Assembly: GCA_020184695.1 (NCBI GenBank)
Contig: JAANOX010000081.1
Location: 124,001 to 188,000, forward strand
Direction: 5' to 3'
Origin: Histomonas meleagridis 2922-C6/04-290x
Taxonomy: Eukaryota; Protista; Parabasalia
DNA: 64,000 bases
The notes beneath the pieces were generated by a model. That model had not been told where the DNA came from and did no database searches. It was given only the letters and a program-made list of their open reading frames with translations. A program made the position numbers and the translations under genes. The stretch's first letter is position 1, and each line of letters opens with the position of its first letter. Positions 3,530-58,394 of this stretch are shown here, in pieces.

Positions 3530-4079
3530 ACTTTATAATTAAATCATCTTTCAATTGTGTAATTTTATTTACTTTAGATATGAAGTTTGAATAAGAAAAA
3601 TTTAGGAGTTTAAAACACAGTAAACAACAATTGAATTTTTATGTTTGATGATATTAATTTCAATGGAACTTATTTAGTTTTTGATCTGATAAAAGGAAAA
3701 TTCAATTTTATTAATTATAAATTCAAGTATTTTATGAAATCGGAGAAATTCATGTGATAATTTTTCCCACATCTTTTTCTTTTAAATTTTCATAAGTTCA
3801 AGTTTTTAAAAATTATGGACAGATATGCACCTTCATTATTTATAACCAAAGAAAGCAAGCTGATTCATAGATGGAAGTAAATCATTTACTTTTTTATCAA
3901 ATGCGTGATTAATTGATAAAAATCATATTTCAAAAACATTATATATCATAAATTGAAAATATTAGTAAAAACTAGAATGAATTACATTGAAGAAAATAAT
4001 ATCTTATTCCAATGTTTATACAATTAATTGATAAGAACCGTTTTGCATTGCGGTTGTTTAGAGACCGTTAAAAGTACCA

Positions 4080-4661
4080 ATGATTGGAAATTTATACAAA
4101 TTCTTTGGTTTTAAGACATGCAAATGTTTCAACAAACCAAGAAATATTAGGATTGTTATGGTTGGAGTTCGTGCTTCAGGGAAAACAGTCATTTTGAATA
4201 GAATCAAATTAAATGAATTCAAACAATCTATCCATACAATGAATTTTAACATTGAAAATATTACATTTAAAGGGCTTGATGTGGATGTTTGGGATATTGG
4301 AGATTCTGGAGATAGAATTCGTCCTCTTTGGTGTCATTTTTATTATAATGCTGATGGATTTATATATGTTGTAGACTCTAGTGATATTGTTAATATTAAT
4401 GAATCGAGATACGTACTTAGTGAGTCTGTTTTAGAAAAGATTGAAATTCCAAATCCCATTATGCTTGTATATGCAAACAAGCAAGATCTTCCAAATTCAC
4501 ACACACCAAGCGAAATTGGAGAATCACTTCAACTAGGTAATGTTCCAAATCTTACATGGAAAGTTCAAGGAGCGAGTGCAAAAACCGGCGATGGAATCTT
4601 TGAAGGATTCGAATGGCTCATTGAACAAATCAAGGCACGTGGTTTTATATATGATTTTTAA
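4080..4661 (+). CDS. ADP-ribosylation factor (Arf/Arl) family GTPase, atypical
   Basis: GVRASGKT P-loop, VWDIG, IRPLWCHFY, ANKQDL, GASAKTGDGIFEGFEWL. Confidence 0.9.
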   Translation: MIGNLYKFFGFKTCKCFNKPRNIRIVMVGVRASGKTVILNRIKLNEFKQSIHTMNFNIENITFKGLDVDVWDIGDSGDRIRPLWCHFYYNADGFIYVVDSSDIVNINESRYVLSESVLEKIEIPNPIMLVYANKQDLPNSHTPSEIGESLQLGNVPNLTWKVQGASAKTGDGIFEGFEWLIEQIKARGFIYDF

Positions 4662-4712
4662 TGTTTAAAAAAATTTATTTTTTTTATGAATTCTGTCAAC
4701 CAAGTGAAATAA

Positions 4713-4725
4713 AAAGTGACACTTA
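4713..4725 (+). promoter_or_regulatory. AAAGTGAC (T. vaginalis M2-like) core promoter motif with overlapping ACACTT Inr-like site; probable promoter of the snoRNA host
   Basis: AAAGTGACACTTA. The same arrangement, AAAGTGACACTTT, lies directly before the ATG at 27116. Confidence 0.55.
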
Positions 4726-4808
4726 GCCAGAAAATTCTATAATAAAACACCCATACATTTTAGGGTTTTGAAAATTGGACCATTTGGCTGACCATATTTG
4801 CAAAAAGC

Positions 4809-4901
4809 GTATGTTTCTTTGCCTCTGATGATTTTTTCAGCCTTGTCGGAAATGTGATGACGCGAAGCATCTGAGGCGGATAATTATAAACTAACACATA
4901 G
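4809..4901 (+). other. Spliceosomal intron (93 nt), parabasalid type, in a non-coding host transcript
   Basis: 5' site GTATGT at 4809. ACTAACACATAG at 4890-4901 matches the fused branch point/3' splice site motif ACTAACACACAG of T. vaginalis introns with one mismatch. Confidence 0.75.
4821..4877 (+). ncRNA. Box C/D snoRNA, predicted guide for 2'-O-methylation of the SSU rRNA G in CAA(G)GCUGAAA
   Basis: Terminal stem GCCTC/GAGGC; C box TGATGA 4826-4831; guide TTTCAGCCTTG 4835-4845; D' CGGA 4847-4850; C' TGATGA 4855-4860; D box CTGA 4871-4874. Confidence 0.8.
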
Positions 4902-5260
4902 TGAATATTTAAGATCATCTTCCACAATATATTATTAATAAAATTTACTACATCTTTATTTCAAAGCTTATCTTTTTCAATTTTTTTAATATCTTTGGTA
5001 TGGAGTTATTAAAAATCCTTCCAATAGTCATTTATTCATTGAACTTAGATTTTTCAGACAGAATAAATTCTGAGGATCTGATAATAAAATTATGCTAATG
5101 TATCATATATAACGACATTTTGAAGCTCGAGATCAAAAGAACTTTTCCATCGGAAGCTAAACAGCAGCTGATCGACAAATTGAATTTTCTGACCTTTTCT
5201 CTTTGAATTTCAAATGAGGGAGGTAAAAGCAGAAAAGTAATTTCAGTTCACAAAATACAA

Positions 5261-5860
5261 ATGAATACTCCTGATAAAAGCGGATCCTTTAAAGTTATCA
5301 TAGTTGGGGAATCTTTTGTTGGAAAAACATCGATTATAAAATGTTTGACTGAAAATGATTTTCGAATTAATGAACAAAATACTGTCAATGCTTCCTACAA
5401 TGATGTCATTATTCCAACATCTCACGGGCCAGCACAACTTGCAATTTGGGATACAGCAGGAACAGAGAGATTTCAATCTTTAATTCCATCTTATACAAGA
5501 AACGCAGACGCTGTTGTAATTGTTATGTCAATGTCAGATGCTGATTCCTTTGGAAGGGGTAAGGAATGGCTAGATTGCGCTCTTAAACCTCTTTCTTATG
5601 TTCCACAATTAATGGTTCTTGTTAATAAGAGCGATCTTGATCCAGTCATCAAACTTTCTGATGTTAAGGAATGGGCTGAAGAAAAAGGTATGCTTTATTT
5701 CGAAACTTCAGCTAAAACAGGTTATCAAGTTTCAGAATCTTTCCAAAGTCTTGCTGAAGAACTTGTCAAAAATGCACAAAAAGGAAATTCCACATATTTA
5801 GAATCTACTGAAGGTATAAGTCTGAATTCTATCAATGATACCTCCAAAAGTTGTTGTTAA
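5261..5860 (+). CDS. Rab family GTPase
   Basis: GESFVGKT, WDTAGTERF, NKSD, ETSAK, C-terminal SCC prenylation motif. Confidence 0.95.
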   Translation: MNTPDKSGSFKVIIVGESFVGKTSIIKCLTENDFRINEQNTVNASYNDVIIPTSHGPAQLAIWDTAGTERFQSLIPSYTRNADAVVIVMSMSDADSFGRGKEWLDCALKPLSYVPQLMVLVNKSDLDPVIKLSDVKEWAEEKGMLYFETSAKTGYQVSESFQSLAEELVKNAQKGNSTYLESTEGISLNSINDTSKSCC

Positions 5861-5884
5861 ATCACTTTAAACAAATTTGTTTTT

Positions 5885-7291
5885 TTATTGATCACCCTCC
5901 TCTACAAATGTGTCAACTATAGTTGTAATCCTATCTATAAGATATCTTAAACTAATATCATCAGGATCCAATCCTGAATGTATTAGATCCAAAAAATCAT
6001 CATTAGCAAATTTTTCAACAGCCCATTGATTTGATGCTAGAAATGGAGCTAAGAACTCTATTATCTTACATTGAATTTCTGGATCTAGAGTCATTAATAA
6101 ATCCACAAACATTTCAACAACATCATCACTGAAAAGCTGTTCAAAATCATCGGTTTTTTGATTGAAAAAAGTTATTATCAAAAAGCCGATTTCGACTTTA
6201 ATGTGAAGTGAAGCGCCTTCGAAAACAGCTAAAATCGCACCAACTCCATTACCATTTGCAAATATCTGTGCGTTTGATCTTTTTAATGCAATGAAGTTGT
6301 TTAACAGGATAACTGCACCTCTAGAAATATTTATAGTAGGGCAATTTACCATTTGAAAAAGATCATCAATTGGGAAAAAACGCTGCAAAATTCTTTGCTT
6401 TGATTCAACTTCAGTCCTAAACATAATAGCGTAAACGTAAAGTGCTATTGAAACTATTTGTTCATTATTATCATATAAACATTTGTGAATTAGTTTAATA
6501 AACTCTTTATCTATGAAATCTTCCATATGTATATGTGAGTTTTTAAACCAAAAGTAAACACACCACATCGAGAAAACTCGTGTTCTCTCATCTCCATTTT
6601 TAATATAAAAAGGAATATATTTGAAAAACGTTGCGTTTGTTTCACTTTTAGAGATTTCAACATATCGAAGAATATTCATTAATGAAATAGGAATAAAAAA
6701 GGAATCATCCGACTCTAAACTATATGCTTTTGAAACTATGTGCGAAAAAACTTCTGTAGTGTTATCAAGAAGATATTTTGCACTGATTGATGATAAATTA
6801 TATGAACAAAGAAGAAATAAAATTTGTTGACCTTTATCAAGAAATTGATTCCGCGCATGCATTATTGCTTCTACACCATAATTATTATAAAAAAGTTGGC
6901 AAAATTGGTCTGATTTGGCTGTTAAATTAATAAATAACTCAAATATATATGGTATAAATGGAAGTGGTATTGTATGATTAGAAAGATTAATAAGAAAAAT
7001 AGCAATTTTGGATTGCATTAAAAAACTAAAGTAATTGGTGAAATCGACATTTGGAAGTGAAAAATGATATGTTACTGCTTGAATGTGATTAATCATTTCG
7101 AGTATATTTCCTAATTTATATGATTCAATTATAAGTTGAAGTTCTTGTTGATATGCCGGAAATGCTAAAAAATTTTGTTCATTTGGAACATAGTCATCAA
7201 GGTATTCATTAGAATAATCTCGTAGTTCCGAAAGTAATAAAATCCTTTTGAGGTGCGCAGATTTTGAAATTTTTTGCTTCTTGAATTGCAT
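5885..7291 (-). CDS. ARM/HEAT-repeat protein, importin-alpha-like fold
   Basis: First in-frame ATG at 7291 (track start is TTG). Helical repeats such as IFELFINLT, VFSMWCVYFW, AVILLNNFI, NGVGAIL. Confidence 0.55.
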   Translation of the reverse strand: MQFKKQKISKSAHLKRILLLSELRDYSNEYLDDYVPNEQNFLAFPAYQQELQLIIESYKLGNILEMINHIQAVTYHFSLPNVDFTNYFSFLMQSKIAIFLINLSNHTIPLPFIPYIFELFINLTAKSDQFCQLFYNNYGVEAIMHARNQFLDKGQQILFLLCSYNLSSISAKYLLDNTTEVFSHIVSKAYSLESDDSFFIPISLMNILRYVEISKSETNATFFKYIPFYIKNGDERTRVFSMWCVYFWFKNSHIHMEDFIDKEFIKLIHKCLYDNNEQIVSIALYVYAIMFRTEVESKQRILQRFFPIDDLFQMVNCPTINISRGAVILLNNFIALKRSNAQIFANGNGVGAILAVFEGASLHIKVEIGFLIITFFNQKTDDFEQLFSDDVVEMFVDLLMTLDPEIQCKIIEFLAPFLASNQWAVEKFANDDFLDLIHSGLDPDDISLRYLIDRITTIVDTFVEEGDQ

Positions 7292-7362: not shown

Positions 7363-8535
7363 TTATTTAGGAAAATCATGACAATGGTCAATGCTTTTAG
7401 CAATGCTATGCCTAAAGTCATCGAATCTTACTAAAGTTTCATTGAACCCGCTAATTTTAACAGGTTCGCCATTAAATACATATCTCACATAAATTTGTTG
7501 ATCTTTTGCTTTCCATAACTCCATTGATAAGTATGAAGCATAAGGAGGCATGAAATTGTTCAAGTTTCCAAGTGCAACAAGAACAGCTGCAATTGTTGTA
7601 TCGTGAGCACTTAATAATGTGAACTTTTTACCATTCATTGTGGCTATTGATTCGTCTGCTGCCTTAAATGCATTCCGTAATATGTAAGAAGCAGCAAGTC
7701 CAGGTCCATACTTAAGGCGGTTATACCTTTGATATTGGAAATAACCGTTAAATTCATTGCACTTATCGACGACGGTTTTCGTGATGTACTCTGGCATTGG
7801 GTTATCGCTGCATGAGAATGCGGCTAACCATGAGCAGAAATCTTTCACGTTAGCAAGAGTGCAATCACCTCTTCCAAGATTTGTAAGCGATTCTTTTACA
7901 TATTGATATGTATCTTTCACAACAGAAAACATAACTTCACCATTTTCAAATTCTGCTTGGGCTTCATCAAGCTCTTTACATGAATAACCATTGACAACAA
8001 CAGTAGAAGCTGCTTCAGTACCAGTTTGAATTGTGATGACTTCATTTGGATTTGCAGGTTCATAAAGACCATCTATAAATGATTCTGCACTTCTAAAACA
8101 TCTGTCTATTGGTGATGCTATGAATTGAACAACTCTTGGATCTAATTTCTCTGGAAGGAATTTTAATGTATCAACTAAGTATTTGCGGAATGCTTTGCCA
8201 AGCTCAAGATGTTCTTTCATGCCCTCGGTTGTTAAGTCTCCAGTTTGACAACTTGATGGATATTCTGCATATCTTTCATCAATCTTATGGAAAACATAAC
8301 GATAATGCTTAGATGGTGATGTGGATGTTCGAGGCGCGATTAAGTCTGGTTCGTTACATGTCCATTTTCCTCTTTGTGAACGATTTAAGAAAAGTTCAAT
8401 TGGGGATCTCATTCCATGCCTTGTGATAACTTGGATATATACCATTTCCATATCATTCACAGGTTGTGCTTGGGTAGTTGGTGCAAAGCAAGCGAATTCG
8501 TCTGCTATGACAGTGCAAACGATACAAAAAAACAT
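7363..8535 (-). CDS. Histidine acid phosphatase, secreted/lysosomal type
   Basis: RHGMRSP (RHGxRxP) and AHD catalytic motifs; short hydrophobic N-terminus. Confidence 0.95.
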   Translation of the reverse strand: MFFCIVCTVIADEFACFAPTTQAQPVNDMEMVYIQVITRHGMRSPIELFLNRSQRGKWTCNEPDLIAPRTSTSPSKHYRYVFHKIDERYAEYPSSCQTGDLTTEGMKEHLELGKAFRKYLVDTLKFLPEKLDPRVVQFIASPIDRCFRSAESFIDGLYEPANPNEVITIQTGTEAASTVVVNGYSCKELDEAQAEFENGEVMFSVVKDTYQYVKESLTNLGRGDCTLANVKDFCSWLAAFSCSDNPMPEYITKTVVDKCNEFNGYFQYQRYNRLKYGPGLAASYILRNAFKAADESIATMNGKKFTLLSAHDTTIAAVLVALGNLNNFMPPYASYLSMELWKAKDQQIYVRYVFNGEPVKISGFNETLVRFDDFRHSIAKSIDHCHDFPK

Positions 8536-9496: not shown

Positions 9497-9806
9497 TATC
9501 ACATCAAATTTGACTTAGGTTTGTTCGGCTGGTTATTCACACAAATCCCCTTAGCCATTGTAAATTATTGAATTGCCATTGAAAAAGCGTCATTTTTCAT
9601 CGTCCAAAAAAAACACTTTTAAATCATCAATTTCTAAATTTTTTTCTATAATTTTTGTTATTTCATGATACATCACATTTGTATTATTCTGCATAAAAGT
9701 TATTTTCGTATAACTCGATGTTAAACTTTGGATACATTTTCTCTTCATCTTTTGAAAATGTACATTTTGAGTTCAAACTGCTTCTTATTATGTGAAAAAG
9801 TAACAA

Positions 9807-9846
9807 AACCGTCATTGAATAACCGTCATTACTTTTTTACTCACTC
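9807..9846 (+). promoter_or_regulatory. Tandem AACCGTCATT (Myb-site/M3-like) plus Inr TCACTC upstream of the ATG at 9850
   Basis: Exact 10-nt direct repeat at 9807-9816 and 9821-9830; TCACTC at 9841. Confidence 0.4.
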
Positions 9847-9849
9847 ATA

Positions 9850-12800
9850 ATGTCGGAACATACAGAGATTGTTCTCGAACCACAAAGGCAAACCTTCAAA
9901 GAAGAAGGCCCGACAGAAGTCAACACCATTGAAACGACAAATGATGATGGGACAAAAAAACGAATTACTCAGATCACATCGTCAAGCCGTGAAGTTGACA
10001 CAACAACAGATGTCAAGATAACCAAAGTAAAACGAAGTGCTGAGGCAGTTTATAAGGAAGCCGATATTGATATCACTAAGACTATTATTTCAGCTAAGAA
10101 ATTCTTCGTTTATCCTTATTCTGGTGATTTCATCAGCATTGAATCCTTTGATGCTAAAGGAACTTCACCAAAAGTAGCATTTAATAAGATTATTGACGAT
10201 GAACAAACATTTCAAGCAAAGAAACTTTCAACTAAAGTCCCTCCAAAAGGAAAAAGAGCCCAAATTTTAGAAAAGGTTATGGCAGTCAAAGAACTTCTTG
10301 GAGATGATGATACTGATCTTAAGTCATCATTACAAAATGCAGTTAATACTGATGACCAAATAATGTTAGTTCCACTTCAATCCGAAATCCTTGCAAGCTT
10401 CAAGAAGCATTATGCAGAGAATCCAAAATCGAGGTTAGTTTCATTATTAACCGAAACGTTAATTTATACATCACATTTTTGTGAAGTATCCAAATATTCA
10501 CCGCGTGATGTATCTCTTGAATGCAAGAATGTTATACAACATTTAGGAGACAAACTTGACAAAGATACAATATCATTATTATCTGAAATGTCGGAACTTA
10601 CCCAAGCTGATTCAGTAGAACGTTCTCTTATAATGTCCTATGTTCAACTTTTACGTCCAATTGATCAAATCGAAGTTCAAGTTCTTCGATACATCTCATC
10701 TAATATAGAAGATTCATATCTCATTGATGGTAAAACAGATCAACAAATCCGAGTCAAGCGTTATCTTGAGCATGGAAGTGAATTTCCAAAGAAGAAGAAA
10801 CCACTTAAACCGATTGATATCAAAGAACAATTTTCAATTTGCAAACGTGCCTTTAACAAACTTCATGACATTATTGAAAAAGATGGGAAAGAACCACATA
10901 AAGAATATAGCAAATTCTTTAAAGAAGCTGCTCATTTATTTGAAGATATTGAAAAGTATTATTCATATCCAAAAGTTATTCAAAACTCAACAAATTATAT
11001 AACATATGAAGAAACACTTGAAAAAGCGTTACCAATAATTCAAGACTTAAGTAAAGATGCTAAAACTTATGCACAACGTTCAATTGAATCCTTAAAAATC
11101 TTAATTCGATTAGTTTCATATACACAAGATAATGTTATTACAATTAATTCTGCATTCCAATCATTAACTAATGCACGTACTCAATTAGAGAAAGATATTC
11201 AAGAAAGTGATGATCCTGATTTCATACATCGAATGGCTGCTATTTCAGCAAGTATCTTAAAGTTAAACACGATGATCATTCATCCATTGTTACAAGATTC
11301 TAATATCCAATCAATCCAAAAGTCAATAACAACATTACAACAAGATTTAGAATCACGTACTATATCTAATGAATTCCAAATTGCTCATTGGTTATTAGGT
11401 GCTCCACGATTAATTCAAGCGACATTAATCATTAAATTAAAAGATATCTCAATTGAAATGAAAGAAACATCAGATTTAATTAATTCGAATAAAGCAAATT
11501 ATTCTACTAATGATGTTAAACAAGCATCAGATCAATGGATTAATTTCTTAAATCGTAATTCCGATATAATAAATTCTATGTCAGCAGATATTGAACCAGA
11601 TAAAGCTACAAATGCAACAGAATTAATACAAATTCGATCATCATTTGGTACATTATTAACACGTATCGATGGATTAGGTATTGAACAAAATGTCGAAAAG
11701 ATTACTAATGATATTGAAATGGTAATTTCGATGATCCAAAAAGAAAATTATTATCATAAAGCTAAATATGATGATAAACGAGCTAAAGAAGAAAAGGCTA
11801 AATCATCAAAGTCTATGACAGGACATGTATCATTTACTACTGATAAAGATAAGAAAGATGGAACTGATAAACCTACTGATGAAATTATACAACATGAAAT
11901 GAATACGAATCTTTATCCACGATTTTATCCGCAAACTATTCGTCATCCTATATATGAATCTTGGGATCCTGAAACATTTAAAGATATTATACATGTTACT
12001 AAATCAGTACCAATTGATATGCAAATGTTAAGTAAAGTTACAACAGTTAAATTATCACGACATAGAACTACATCAAAAGTTATTAACTTATTATTTAATT
12101 CTTATATTTTAGAAGATTCTAAATCTGTTAGTCGTAATAAAGTTGAAAAACCTGAAGATCCAAAGAAACAAAAAGAAGAATTCGAAAAGATTAAAAATGA
12201 ATTTGATGATGTTCGATCAGAACCTATGAATGAACAATATGATTTTATAGAAAGATCAGTACCAATATTAAATGATATGTATTTAAATGATGATAAAGAA
12301 TTTGCTGAGAAATATGATAACTTAATCTCAAGAATTAATGATATGATAGTTGAATTAGGTACTGAAAAACGATTTATGTTACCACGAAAAGCAGTAACTC
12401 GATTATCAATTCGATTTGAAGCATTATTAGGTATATTAAATACTTATAAAGATATTGATGAAATTAAAAATGATGAAAAGACTTTATCATCAATAGAAAA
12501 TTGGATTGAATATATTAATGAATTATTACGATGTAATAAAATCATTCAAAACGCAGATGATGAAGTAGCTATAGTTGGAGCTAAATCATTTTATTATACA
12601 TATCGTAGTGGTATTTCATCCTTTACACAAAATGCCGAATTATTTGATCAAAAAGCTAAACGAAGATCAGCAGTTAACTTAACTAAATTAATATTACAAT
12701 TAACTGAAATCATCATTAAATTTAATCAATTAATTACATTCACTGAACTTTGTAGTGTTGAAGATGCACAAAAACAACTTCAAGAACTTGAAGAAGAATT

Positions 12801-27063: not shown

Positions 27064-27115
27064 ACGGCCGTTGACGGCGGTTATTGTAATACCAGAAGTA
27101 CGAAAGTGACACTTT
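27064..27115 (+). promoter_or_regulatory. M3-like CGGCCGTT / CGGCGGTT elements plus M2 AAAGTGAC before the ATG at 27116
   Basis: ACGGCCGTTG 27064-27073, GACGGCGGTT 27073-27082, AAAGTGAC 27103-27110. Confidence 0.5.
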
Positions 27116-28150
27116 ATGGATGAAAACTATCAAGATCCCTCAGGACGGTTCAAAAGGGGAGACGTAATAATACGAAAAGGTATTCAGGTTTCATATAGAG
27201 GGTATGATCAAAATGATGGAATTCTTTGTTTATGGAATGAAATTTATATTGAAGGCTCAACTGAAAGTGGATTTAATAACCTTATTAAAATCATTAACTT
27301 TGTTGGATCAGTTCCACATCCAAATCTTATTGGGCTATATCGTGCTTGGATCGACAAAGCAAGAAAAGTTTTTATTTATATCACTGAACTATTTTCTTTC
27401 CAATCAATTAAGAGCTACATTTCTGAAGTTGTTCATAGTCCATCACGTTCAGCAATTGGAAATTGGTGCAGTCAAATAATTGACGGGCTTGAACAATATC
27501 ATTCAAGGGATCCGCCACTAGCTCATGGAGATATATCATGTAGTAACATTTACATTGATGGATCAGATGGAATTGTTAAAATTGGTCCACCAAATCTTGA
27601 AATGATATTATTTGGAATACCACCAGAACTTGCAGCACCCGAAGTCAAATCTTCCACATCAGATCCAAAGGCAGACATTTGGCAAATCGGCCTTACCATT
27701 ATTGAGATAGCCACAGGTCATGAGCCGTATTCAGAATACACGTCACCAATGGCAAAACGTAATGCAATTGTTGATGGAATCATGCCTCAAGCCATCTCCG
27801 ATGTTTCTGACCCAATAATAGCTGATTTTATTACCACATGTTTATTACCATCAGATCAACGACCATCTTTATCACAACTCCGAGAACATATCCTTATATC
27901 TGAGAACATGAATGCAACTGTTGTTTCATCAATGCGTGAAGAAGGAGCAATTCAAAATGAAAACAAAAACTCAATAGAGAACGTTAAGCAGTCACCAGAG
28001 TTTCTCGCTCTTCTGGAGAAACAAAAGAAAGAAAAAGAAGAGCTAGTGAGACAACAGAGAAAAGAAAGGAAAGAGAAAAGAGAAGCAATAAGGTCTGCTT
28101 CCAAAAAGAAACAATCTTTGAGGGAACTGCTCAGTGAAGTTCACTCTTAG
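27116..28150 (+). CDS. WNK/NRBP-like protein, probable pseudokinase
   Basis: VSYRGYD..GILCLWNE, HPNLI..Y.AW, ITELF, DPPLAHGDISCSNIYI, KADIWQIG. The DLG motif is replaced by GPP. Confidence 0.8.
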   Translation: MDENYQDPSGRFKRGDVIIRKGIQVSYRGYDQNDGILCLWNEIYIEGSTESGFNNLIKIINFVGSVPHPNLIGLYRAWIDKARKVFIYITELFSFQSIKSYISEVVHSPSRSAIGNWCSQIIDGLEQYHSRDPPLAHGDISCSNIYIDGSDGIVKIGPPNLEMILFGIPPELAAPEVKSSTSDPKADIWQIGLTIIEIATGHEPYSEYTSPMAKRNAIVDGIMPQAISDVSDPIIADFITTCLLPSDQRPSLSQLREHILISENMNATVVSSMREEGAIQNENKNSIENVKQSPEFLALLEKQKKEKEELVRQQRKERKEKREAIRSASKKKQSLRELLSEVHS

Positions 28151-39636: not shown

Positions 39637-42141
39637 ATGTGGTCTAAGCAAACATATAATCAAACGCCGCCGGACAATATTTGCCAAGAAATCCAAAATT
39701 ACATTCATGACTCTCTATATCCATCATCTTCATTTGAAAATTTTATCATGAAAAAACCAAATGAACATTTTTATTTTTCTAAACCATCAAGTTATCCAGA
39801 AGAATTAAACAGACTACTAAAATCTGATAAATTTGTATCAGGATGGATTGAACAAATCCAATGTTTTTGGGTCGCTAATACAAATTTTTTATTTATATTT
39901 AACAAAGATTTTTCTATTTATTCTTTTGCTCAAATACCAGCACCCGTAGTATGCGTTGGGTATTCACAAGATTTAATAATTGTTTCTTATTATAAATCTT
40001 TATCAACATTTTCATTTCCAGAATTACAACCAATTCCATTAACATTCTCACTTCCCAGTAATGTCACAGTTACATTGATTAAGGAAAAAATTGTTGGGTG
40101 TAACGATGGTTCAATTCGACATCTTAAAATTACTAGAAATTCTGTTAATGTTTCTGGATTTCTTTCATTATCATCAGAAGATCCCATTACAGATATCATT
40201 GAAACAATCAACTATTATGTCACATTATCAATCAATAACAATATTACATTTTTTGATAAATCTAGTTTATCTATCATTTCATCAGTTCAACTCAAGTGTA
40301 TCATTTCCATCTGGTCACCAGATAATCAACAAGTCTTTGCAATAGACAAAAACACAGTCATTTTTACGGTTTCCTGTGAAAAAACCGCCATAACCGTCAC
40401 TCCATCTCAGCAACTTATCAAAGAAAAGGAATTTAAGACTGCTAAATGGGCTCTTGGCTTTTTAACAGTTATTAATCCAGCACCTTCATTTGATTATCTT
40501 CTTACTCTTCGTTTACGGCCAACTCCAATTTGTACAGCAAATTCATTATTAGGAACTGTTTCTAGTATAGGTACAACACCTTTTTATTTTCTCCTACTAA
40601 CATCTTCTGGTGTTGTAACTCTTTACGAACAACTTGAACAAGTTCAAAGTGAAGAAATTTGGAGATTTGCAAATACAGTACTTCCATTTTGGGACAAATC
40701 CATCACCAACCTGCTAGATGCCAATATTTTTTTGGAGTCTCTTAGTAATTATTCGTCATATCAAATATTATCATCTTTGGCCGAATATGTATTAACGATT
40801 GTTGATGATATTACAGTCATAACGCAACACAATGGATCCGTTGGTTATTTTTTTAAAGACTTTTTTGGTCCTGACCGTGATAATATATTTACACATATTC
40901 GCGAATTATCATTTCGTTATCGAATCAGTGCCAATGAACCCACAGATTACAACACTGATCTTGACAGGCTTATTTATTTATCTAATGAAGGTAATGAGAA
41001 TGCTACAAATCAAGCAGTGAACATCATCACCAATTCATTTGACACGTTACCAACCAAATTTATGTTATACTGTGAATTCTTACATGAGCATTGTTATTAT
41101 GAAGAGCTTATTGACTGTATTATTAAGTGGAGTCATTCGATATTACCAGACGATGTCCCATTAGGCGATGATTTACGAACATGTTTATATGATCAATTAA
41201 AACCATTTCTACACATTGCTACATCAATACAAAATCGTCAACATCCCGCAGTGATAACATTACAACGTGCACTTAATCGAAAGAATATCATCTTTCAACT
41301 TTACGTGTTGAATTACTTTGAAGAAAATTGTACTTCTGATACATTTGTCTTTTTTAAGTATAATGAAATGTTACAACAAATGAAAAGTATTTATTCCAAA
41401 CATTTACCGGATGTATATGATAAGTTAGGATTATCACAAGAAGAGTTTGAATATTTAATTAATATTTCGATTTCACAATCAGATATTCATATTGATGAAC
41501 GAATTCATTATTTAGAAAGGGCTAAAAAATTATATCCGAATAATGATAAAGTTAATATATATTTAAATTGTGCATATGCATTACATGACTTTATTTTAGA
41601 TCATTATCCACAAGTCGAAATGTATTTTTTCGCAAAAGATTTTAATGTTATCACTGAAACATTAAGTCAATTTAATGAAAATGAATTAGCGTTAAGTATT
41701 ATGTCGATTTATAACATTAAAAATTATGAAATATTTAAACGGTTCTTATTGACAATGAATAAAGAATCACTTCAACGATATATAGAAAGTAATGGCTTGT
41801 TCATACAAAGTGAAATAGTACAAATTTTATACGAAATTAATGGAATTGATATAATCGATTACTTGTTGGAAAGTGGAGTTGAGCCTTGTTACATATTCGA
41901 CATATTCCTCCAAATTAGTGATAAAGATGTGATAATTAAAAACGCAAATAAAATCGCAAATGTTTTCTCAAAATGGGAAAACATTCAAGAAGAAAGAAAG
42001 CAAAAAGTGGTCAACTTCTTGTCCGATTTGTTGGTGGAATTGGATATATACGGAGAATTGGAAATAGCCGATGAAATTAGAAAAAGAATAAATAGGTGTT
42101 TCATACAAAATAAATTTGAAGATATTTGGGATAATTTATAA
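39637..42141 (+). CDS. Nup155/Nup170-like nucleoporin (short, divergent)
   Basis: N-terminal CFWVANTNFLFIF...YSFAQIPAPVVCVG resembles the Nup155 propeller start; IFQLYVLNYF and IDERIHYLERA resemble the Nup170 C-terminal solenoid. Confidence 0.55.
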   Translation: MWSKQTYNQTPPDNICQEIQNYIHDSLYPSSSFENFIMKKPNEHFYFSKPSSYPEELNRLLKSDKFVSGWIEQIQCFWVANTNFLFIFNKDFSIYSFAQIPAPVVCVGYSQDLIIVSYYKSLSTFSFPELQPIPLTFSLPSNVTVTLIKEKIVGCNDGSIRHLKITRNSVNVSGFLSLSSEDPITDIIETINYYVTLSINNNITFFDKSSLSIISSVQLKCIISIWSPDNQQVFAIDKNTVIFTVSCEKTAITVTPSQQLIKEKEFKTAKWALGFLTVINPAPSFDYLLTLRLRPTPICTANSLLGTVSSIGTTPFYFLLLTSSGVVTLYEQLEQVQSEEIWRFANTVLPFWDKSITNLLDANIFLESLSNYSSYQILSSLAEYVLTIVDDITVITQHNGSVGYFFKDFFGPDRDNIFTHIRELSFRYRISANEPTDYNTDLDRLIYLSNEGNENATNQAVNIITNSFDTLPTKFMLYCEFLHEHCYYEELIDCIIKWSHSILPDDVPLGDDLRTCLYDQLKPFLHIATSIQNRQHPAVITLQRALNRKNIIFQLYVLNYFEENCTSDTFVFFKYNEMLQQMKSIYSKHLPDVYDKLGLSQEEFEYLINISISQSDIHIDERIHYLERAKKLYPNNDKVNIYLNCAYALHDFILDHYPQVEMYFFAKDFNVITETLSQFNENELALSIMSIYNIKNYEIFKRFLLTMNKESLQRYIESNGLFIQSEIVQILYEINGIDIIDYLLESGVEPCYIFDIFLQISDKDVIIKNANKIANVFSKWENIQEERKQKVVNFLSDLLVELDIYGELEIADEIRKRINRCFIQNKFEDIWDNL

Positions 42142-44060: not shown

Positions 44061-44142
44061 TGGTACCTGTGGGGTTCGAACCCACGCACCTCTCGGTATT
44101 GGGGCTTAAATCCAACGCCTTAGACCACTCGGCCAAAGTACC
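44061..44142 (-). tRNA. tRNA-Leu (anticodon TAA), 82 nt, intronless
   Basis: Acceptor GGTACTT/AGGTACC+A; D-arm GCCGAGTGGTCTAAGGC; anticodon at 44108-44106; variable arm TACC-GAGA-GGTG; T-loop GGTTCGAACC. Confidence 0.97.
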
Positions 44143-58020: not shown

Positions 58021-58394
58021 TCATTGCTAATATGTTTTTTTTTTTATTTTAGGAATATTATTTTAATACATGTACTGACATTTGTACTTTGGTTTAAACC
58101 TGTTTAACCAGAAAATTTATCATATTCTGGAATGTTTTTTAATATGAACAGACTTAGTTAATATTGACATTAAGACTGATACGAAAAAATGATTATCCAA
58201 AACACACTTCTCAAAAAATGGTATCGGATGATCAATTCAGATGTTTATTATTGTCACTTTTGATAATATCTACTTTTTGAATGATGTGACATTTTTCTCA
58301 AATTTGTAAAGTATTGAAATTTCCAACTTTTAATTTACTTATAAACTGGAATTATCGCTAACAACAAAAAACAAAATTTTCTTTTACCTCAAAA

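Follow-up and report, generated by a model that had tools for sequence, protein, structure and literature searches.

A gap of 600 nt between two same-strand genes of Histomonas meleagridis, an Arf-like open reading frame (ORF) at 4080-4661 and a Rab ORF at 5261-5860, holds a small cassette in which a box C/D small nucleolar RNA (snoRNA) lies framed by the splice signals typical of parabasalid introns. Coordinates are those of the window, i.e., the whole 64-kb stretch of contig JAANOX010000081.1 (assembly GCA_020184695.1) that was analysed. Histomonas is a tritrichomonad-type parabasalid and a parasite of poultry, and the parabasalids have kept a full spliceosome despite only some tens of confirmed introns. 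The H. meleagridis genome measures 43 Mb with a G+C content of about 28-29%, and JAANOX is one of its two whole-genome accessions. The interpretation that we favor, and regard as probable, is that the gap encodes a non-coding polyadenylated transcript whose snoRNA cassette is spliced out to release the snoRNA, with a guide for the 18S rRNA residue equivalent to yeast Gm1126.

Two kinds of comparison bear on the anatomy of this locus: on one hand, orthologous cassettes in Trichomonas vaginalis and on a metagenome contig, L015, and on the other, RNA data in the form of contigs (not raw reads) of four runs from one study, X1 to X4, which were placed on 3800-6200. The features are as follows:

4713-4720 (+), AAAGTGAC, putative core promoter or initiator of the host transcript, from its copy number and its placement near ORFs
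4720-4808 (+), putative exon 1, about 89 nt, without ATG, with a putative 5' end at 4720; covered by RNA contigs in X1, X2 and X4, with none in X3
4809-4901 (+), parabasalid type-A intron-like cassette, 93 nt, running from GTATGT to ACTAACACATAG
4809-4814 (+), 5' splice-site motif GTATGT, with which all three cassettes start
4818-4880 (+), box C/D snoRNA, about 63 nt including the terminal stem, conserved in T. vaginalis and L015
4818-4825 (TTTGCCTC) with 4873-4880 (GAGGCGGA) (+), terminal stem of 8 bp, from the fold
4826-4831 (+), box C, TGATGA (cTGATGA at 4825-4831); TGAAGA in both orthologues
4835-4846 (+), D' guide TTTCAGCCTTGT, 12 nt, complementary to the 18S segment GCAAGGCUGAAA
4847-4850 (+), D' box, a degenerate CGGA; canonical CTGA in both orthologues
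4855-4860 (+), C' box, TGATGA; TGACGA in L015 and AGATGA in T. vaginalis
4861-4870 (+), D guide CGCGAAGCAT, 10 nt, differing from the CAAGAACCTAT common to T. vaginalis and L015
4871-4874 (+), box D, CTGA; CTGA in L015 and CCGA in T. vaginalis
4890-4901 (+), fused branch and 3' splice site ACTAACACATAG, fitting the published type-A 3' motif RCTAACACAYAG, with ACTAAC at 4890-4895
4902-4958 (+), putative exon 2, 57 nt, without ATG, where RNA contigs stop with untemplated A runs
4939-4942 (+), TAAA poly(A) signal, 16 nt upstream of the tail site
4957-4958 (+), poly(A) addition site, with A9 after 4958 in X2 and X3

With orthologues in two other organisms and a guide predicted to address an rRNA residue that is known to be methylated, the segment 4818-4880 appears to be a real box C/D snoRNA. 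It folds at -22.4 kcal/mol (z = -2.75), with the 8-bp terminal stem present in both the minimum-energy and the centroid folds; as the sequence of this stem is identical in both orthologues, there is zero covariation to count. A preliminary description of the stretch, made from its letters alone, had already placed AAAGTGAC, GTATGT and ACTAACACATAG at the positions listed above and had read exon 1 as free of ATG, all of which holds; what it took for a complete C/D snoRNA of 57 nt is likewise real, but its length comes to about 63 nt once the terminal stem is counted. In an Rfam scan of the window no snoRNA family reached its gathering score, the best sub-threshold matches being the archaeal compact C/D small RNAs sR1 (19.7 bits against a gathering score of 45; E 0.011) and sR60 (20.0 bits against 50; E 0.041), and Rfam itself is without any parabasalid snoRNA family. 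These archaeal RNAs are alike in measuring about 55-60 nt, in the symmetric C-D'-C'-D spacing and in having 10-12-nt guides, and sR60 also has the guide core UUCAGCCU in common with the Histomonas snoRNA; however, at scores of about 20 bits, far under the thresholds of 45-50, the likeness is one of layout only.

The segment GCAAGGCUGAAA is universally conserved in 18S rRNA, and the D' guide would pair with it through 11 Watson-Crick pairs and a single G-U pair. By the fifth-nucleotide rule, the nucleotide five upstream of D' would face the first G of the GG in this segment. We take this G to be yeast 18S G1126, counting back from the m1acp3-pseudouridine 1191 in the yeast sequence; the same numbering also gives U1269 and G1271, which are methylated sites there. 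Yeast 18S G1126 is a known 2'-O-methylated residue, and the D' guide would direct 2'-O-methylation of the equivalent 18S G, a target that is predicted from universally conserved 18S sequence. In yeast the guide for Gm1126 is snR41. The two would be alike in addressing the same universal 18S stretch and, by this count, in selecting the same G; snR41, however, is made from a polycistronic snR41-snR70-snR51 precursor rather than an intron, and the comparison covers the guide. Guides of this kind may also occur outside the parabasalids: two unrelated metagenome contigs with 49-52% G+C carry TTTCAGCCTTGT followed directly by CTGA (L003:1340-1400 on the + strand and L005 at about 3034-2981 on the - strand), the complementarity to 18S being longer in L003, and these elements are probably snR41-type guides of other eukaryotes. 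Among the snoRNAs that Chen et al. 2011 list, the Histomonas guide does not appear.

The T. vaginalis orthologue of the cassette comes from a published set of intron-like sequences without RNA-seq support, 34 of them in T. vaginalis and 20 in T. stableri (S3 Table of PLoS Pathog 2025, Carlton and colleagues, PMC12316389), where it stands as entry 11, an "inactive intron" of 113 nt at chr_IV:33733092-33733204. That study did not recognise entry 11 as a snoRNA, nor any snoRNA in its "inactive" sequences, which were seen as possible remnants. The third copy, of 90 nt at L015:9268-9357, emerged from a metagenome scan with the guide and the branch motif; the other nine of the ten matches, L003 and L005 among them, were chance or unrelated. 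L015 (identical to L012) is the metagenome contig Ga0209639_1000599, and the same locus was assembled in two further samples (L016 and L017). From its splice motif, a G+C content of 35% and a D guide identical to that of T. vaginalis, its organism is taken to be a parabasalid.

Across these three organisms the mean column identity of the cassette is 80%, and the three-way alignment keeps the stem (TTTGCCTC/GAGGCGG), box C, the D' guide, D', C' and box D, with the D' guide TTCAGCCTTGT being identical in all three. The cassettes likewise end in AACTAACACAYAG in every case, just as they all begin with GTATGT; that a gapped MAFFT alignment shows only G1 and T2 of the latter as invariant is an artefact of gap placement. 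By contrast, the spacers that separate the snoRNA from these motifs are constant neither in sequence nor in length: the 5' spacers measure 3, 0 and 9 nt, and the 3' spacers, measured to AACTAACACAYAG, 9, 7 and 21 nt. The constancy of the splice signals in all three organisms, next to spacers that vary, supports the view that the signals flanking the snoRNA are themselves under selection. As for the exon flanks, those of Histomonas and L015 have no significant similarity when judged against shuffled sequence (exon 1, p = 0.31; exon 2, p = 0.42), and a seeming resemblance of the two exon-1 sequences when aligned pairwise was set aside, being not significant against shuffles. A conserved cassette between exons that are not conserved is the signature of a non-coding snoRNA host gene. 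In L015 the cassette lies within a gap of 282 nt (L015:9198-9478) that follows a 253-aa coiled-coil ORF. Next to a 43%-identical relative of the L015 neighbour gene (on L013 and L014), the syntenic gap measures 48 nt (L013:6090-6138) and is without a cassette, which indicates that the position of the locus is not conserved among relatives.

The published definition of the type-A intron calls for a 5' GYAYGY, a 3' RCTAACACAYAG and a length of about 56-196 nt, and the 93-nt cassette agrees with it in both motifs and length. The snoRNA fills about two-thirds of it, with 3 nt between the 5' splice motif and its start and 9 nt between its end and the branch motif. Formation of the stem would leave 9 + 21 = 30 single-stranded nt between the splice sites, within the 25-44 nt splice-site distance of folded long T. 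vaginalis introns (Hudson et al. 2019). A search that tolerates one mismatch finds the sequence ACTAACACAYAG only once in the window, against an expectation of 0.02 exact matches from base composition, and a looser intron regular expression finds this cassette alone in the window and the orthologue alone in 19 kb of L015. Could these motifs nevertheless coincide by chance in AT-rich intergenic DNA? From base composition the expected number of GTATGT/ACTAACACAYAG pairs is 0.001 per window and about 0.7 per 43-Mb genome, so that the pair alone is not decisive at the scale of the genome, and the Rfam matches are sub-threshold. What is decisive instead is the exact framing of the snoRNA by the two motifs together with its conservation in two other organisms: T. 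vaginalis and an independent organism known from a metagenome have the same cassette, guide and stem, and this recurrence refutes coincidence, to which we assign a negligible probability.

The four runs were judged to be RNA because their insert ends carry a sequence that we recognise as the MGI sequencing adapter and because their depth tracks genes and is zero over 3881-3961; the libraries look poly(A)-selected. In X2 a contig stops at 4958 and continues as A9, and in X3 a complete insert, 4829-4958 plus A9, lies between both adapters. A TAAA is found in L015 at the matching offset from the 3' splice site (+37 vs. +38), and in T. vaginalis a UAAA lies 10-30 nt upstream of transcript ends (long-read intron paper of 2026). 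The transcript is polyadenylated before the Rab gene and so is not the Rab 5' untranslated region (UTR). That the cassette sits within a long 5' UTR of Rab is highly improbable: an X1 contig does run unbroken from 4000 past 6200 and an X3 contig from 4940 into Rab, but against this stand the poly(A) after 4958 in two runs, Rab contigs that begin only at 5016 (X4) and 5047 (X2), and the length of such a UTR, which would exceed 350 nt even after splicing. The predicted spliced host would measure 146 nt with zero ATG, and in the unspliced RNA ATGs occur inside the cassette only. Thus, three further points of the preliminary description stand—a locus that ends near 4960, a host distinct from the Rab 5' UTR, and a predicted spliced product without a long ORF.

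Its proposal that reads would join 4808 to 4902 fared differently, and several observations weigh against splicing and release from a separate host. There is no 4808/4902 junction in the contigs of the four runs, contigs which keep the dominant path only, and those of X1, X2 and X4 cross 4809 unspliced, as do all contigs that span this position. The poly(A)-tailed X3 insert keeps the 3' half of the cassette, and the contigs of X1, X2 and X4 are unbroken from the Arf-like gene into it. The methylation target, for its part, is a prediction from universally conserved 18S sequence. In T. vaginalis, too, the orthologue and its class are labelled "No RNAseq evidence", "Not assembled, Low coverage" and "No SJ reads" (PMC12316389). 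The missing junction is nonetheless an absence of evidence, because contigs hold the dominant path, with minor variants lost from them, and because an RNA of 146 nt is a poor substrate for standard libraries. Of the non-coding intron host as first described, then, the anatomy, the selected splice signals and the non-coding poly(A) carrier stand, whereas splicing, with no junction seen, and independence from the Arf-like gene are predictions.

These same data can be accommodated without any splicing, if the poly(A) precursor is simply trimmed by exonucleases down to the small nucleolar ribonucleoprotein (snoRNP) and the splice-like motifs are relics or are otherwise used. Such a route would match the published label of an inactive intron and the exclusively unspliced RNA of all four runs, including the tailed insert with its part of the cassette; it would also match a class that is without junction reads in either T. 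vaginalis or T. stableri (PMC12316389), and there is a precedent in Giardia, whose snoRNAs come from independent precursors via a dedicated 3' motif. Yet a relic would decay, whereas the three organisms, diverged as they are, have the same 18 nt of splice signal beside spacers and exons that have changed, and the libraries would in any case have captured a short spliced RNA poorly. We consider trimming alone unlikely, although it deserves some weight.

The continuity of the RNA contigs with the upstream gene raises the further alternative that the cassette is a 3'-UTR intron of the Arf-like gene, carried on an isoform with its start near 4000 that arises by read-through or by use of an alternative poly(A) site. 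Contigs run unbroken from 4000-4007 to 4858 in X4, to 4958 in X2 and beyond that in X1, and in L015 the cassette begins just 70 nt past the stop of a same-strand ORF. In X3, however, the Arf-like contig stops at 4676 and depth is 0 over 4691-4771, a break which favors a separate transcription unit, as the continuous contigs of X1, X2 and X4 do not. A TAAA at 4666-4669 follows the Arf-like stop codon, the AAAGTGAC at 4713 resembles elements directly upstream of two ORFs, and a contig spanning two genes is no proof of a single transcript. On balance an Arf-like 3'-UTR intron seems improbable.

The case for a separate start near 4720 draws on AAAGTGAC, which has six copies in the window against 2.5 expected: those at 4713, 27103, 32989, 39589 and 39621 on the + strand and that at 58253 on the - strand. 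None of the six overlaps an ORF of at least 100 aa in the ORF table, and the copies at 27103 and 39589/39621 lie 1-48 nt upstream of the ATG of the long ORFs 27116-28150 and 39637-42141. The copy at 4713 extends as AAAGTGACACTT, identical to the copy 13 nt upstream of the ATG at 27116. This distribution is suggestive of a core promoter motif. The copy at 58253 (-) is without a long ORF downstream and might drive another non-coding RNA. Other motifs, AACCGTT, GCGGTT and AACGGTC-like, recur at most 60 nt before many long ORFs of the window (e.g., at 4030-4075, upstream of 7363-8535, and at 9790-9850), and they are reminiscent of M3, a Myb-type promoter element of T. vaginalis.

Taken as a spliced non-coding host, the locus would work in the following manner. 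A short RNA polymerase II transcript would arise between the Arf-like and Rab genes, probably starting near 4720, and would be cleaved and polyadenylated at 4958; it would encode no protein, its sole conserved content being the 93-nt cassette. The snoRNP proteins would first bind and assemble at the C/D motif, and pairing of the terminal stem (8 bp) would draw the splice sites to within about 30 single-stranded nt of each other. The spliceosome would then remove the cassette as a lariat, which would be debranched and trimmed by exonucleases until these are halted at the snoRNP, leaving the spliced 146-nt host RNA as a disposable product. A parallel may be struck with the non-coding snoRNA hosts of animals (UHG/U22HG, GAS5 and Drosophila dUHG), which are likewise poly(A) transcripts without a meaningful ORF in which the snoRNA intron is conserved and the exons are not. 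The Histomonas host differs in having one intron, in measuring only about 146 nt when spliced, in giving about two-thirds of the intron to the snoRNA, and in that its splicing is predicted. In the metamonad Giardia, snoRNAs come from independent or dicistronic transcripts with a dedicated 12-nt 3'-end processing motif. Both systems would thus free their snoRNAs from longer precursors via a conserved flanking signal; in Giardia, however, this is a dedicated cleavage motif, whereas in Histomonas the flanking signals are splice signals.

As regards the neighboring genes, the Arf-like protein was found only in the two H. meleagridis genome assemblies. Its deposited gene model begins at 4158 (167 aa), while a start of the ORF at 4080 gives the protein an Arf-type N-terminus in addition, and the RNA contigs of the gene begin at about 4000-4007; the annotated start is probably too far downstream. 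The closest homologue of the Rab protein, at 61% identity, lies on contig L002, with just 98 bp upstream of the gene there. The Rab RNA contigs begin at 4940, 5016 or 5047, i.e., 215-320 nt before the ATG, and upstream ATGs occur inside the stretch 4940-5260; this stretch either belongs to an unusually long Rab 5' UTR, stems from transcription running on past the snoRNA host, or forms a small transcript of its own. Elsewhere in the window the sole Rfam match at gathering score is a tRNA at 44061-44142 (-), whose 82 nt, compared with the 71 positions of the model, may reflect a long variable arm or an intron.

The Histomonas cassette is not an isolated case. Entries 1-18 of the T. vaginalis table are long (>50 nt) type-A sequences of snoRNA size; at least 16 of these 18 have a C/D layout, and most of the long entries share the order GTATGT - C/D snoRNA - ACTAACACACAG. 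The layout was judged by eye, entry 11 alone having been aligned computationally, from a C-like box towards the 5' end, one of CTGA, CCGA or CAGA towards the 3' end, and flanking complementary stems. Several entries of the table are conserved between T. vaginalis and T. stableri. The guides of the T. vaginalis entries include ATTCCTCTCGT and CCCCGACGGGCGGT, with putative complementarity to the sarcin-ricin loop of 28S rRNA and the decoding-centre strand of 18S rRNA, respectively; the guides of entries 7 and 17 would address the sarcin-ricin loop and those of entries 8 and 13 the decoding-centre strand. A C/D layout in at least 16 of 18 long entries makes the arrangement a class. Whether across the parabasalids a large share of the long canonical intron-type sequences lie outside protein genes and are dedicated snoRNA carriers in tiny non-coding poly(A) transcripts, in a scheme that predates the split of Trichomonas and Histomonas, we judge to be about evenly balanced.

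The intron-borne C/D snoRNA in a non-coding host is a known arrangement, encountered here in a lineage where it was thought unlikely: earlier surveys of T. vaginalis non-coding RNAs held intronic snoRNAs to be "highly unlikely". Wang et al. 2018 set aside 22 of the 41 intron fragments of Vanacova as lying in "non-transcribed intergenic regions". The intron papers of 2018 (Wang et al.), 2019 (Hudson et al.) and 2026 (long-read) leave snoRNAs unmentioned, and the PLoS Pathog paper of 2025 (PMC12316389) makes only the general remark that 5'-UTR introns can hold snoRNA genes. The "intronic snoRNAs" of T. vaginalis are mentioned only as unpublished data by Simoes-Barbosa et al. 2008. In the literature searched, which covered snoRNAs, introns and host genes of Trichomonas and other parabasalids, no description of the arrangement was found beyond this aside of 2008, its sole trace, in keeping with the novelty originally suspected.

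The locus and its orthologues define a conserved class of intron-type cassettes with a guide for rRNA modification as their sole conserved content, such that sequences published as inactive introns or remnants gain a function and snoRNA genes are supplied that homology searches miss. That no junction is seen in three species might mean either that the spliced host is too small or unstable to see, or that the spliceosome is used in a way that leaves little ligated product. If the wider class is real, about 18 of the 57 long type-A sequences in the T. vaginalis tables would belong to it, and the published "inactive introns" would be the missing snoRNA genes of these organisms. The release of snoRNAs would then be a main reason for which nearly intron-free cells keep a spliceosome. 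The cassette offers a testable reason why eukaryotes poor in introns retain both these and the spliceosome, with a parallel in the snoRNA introns that yeast has kept.

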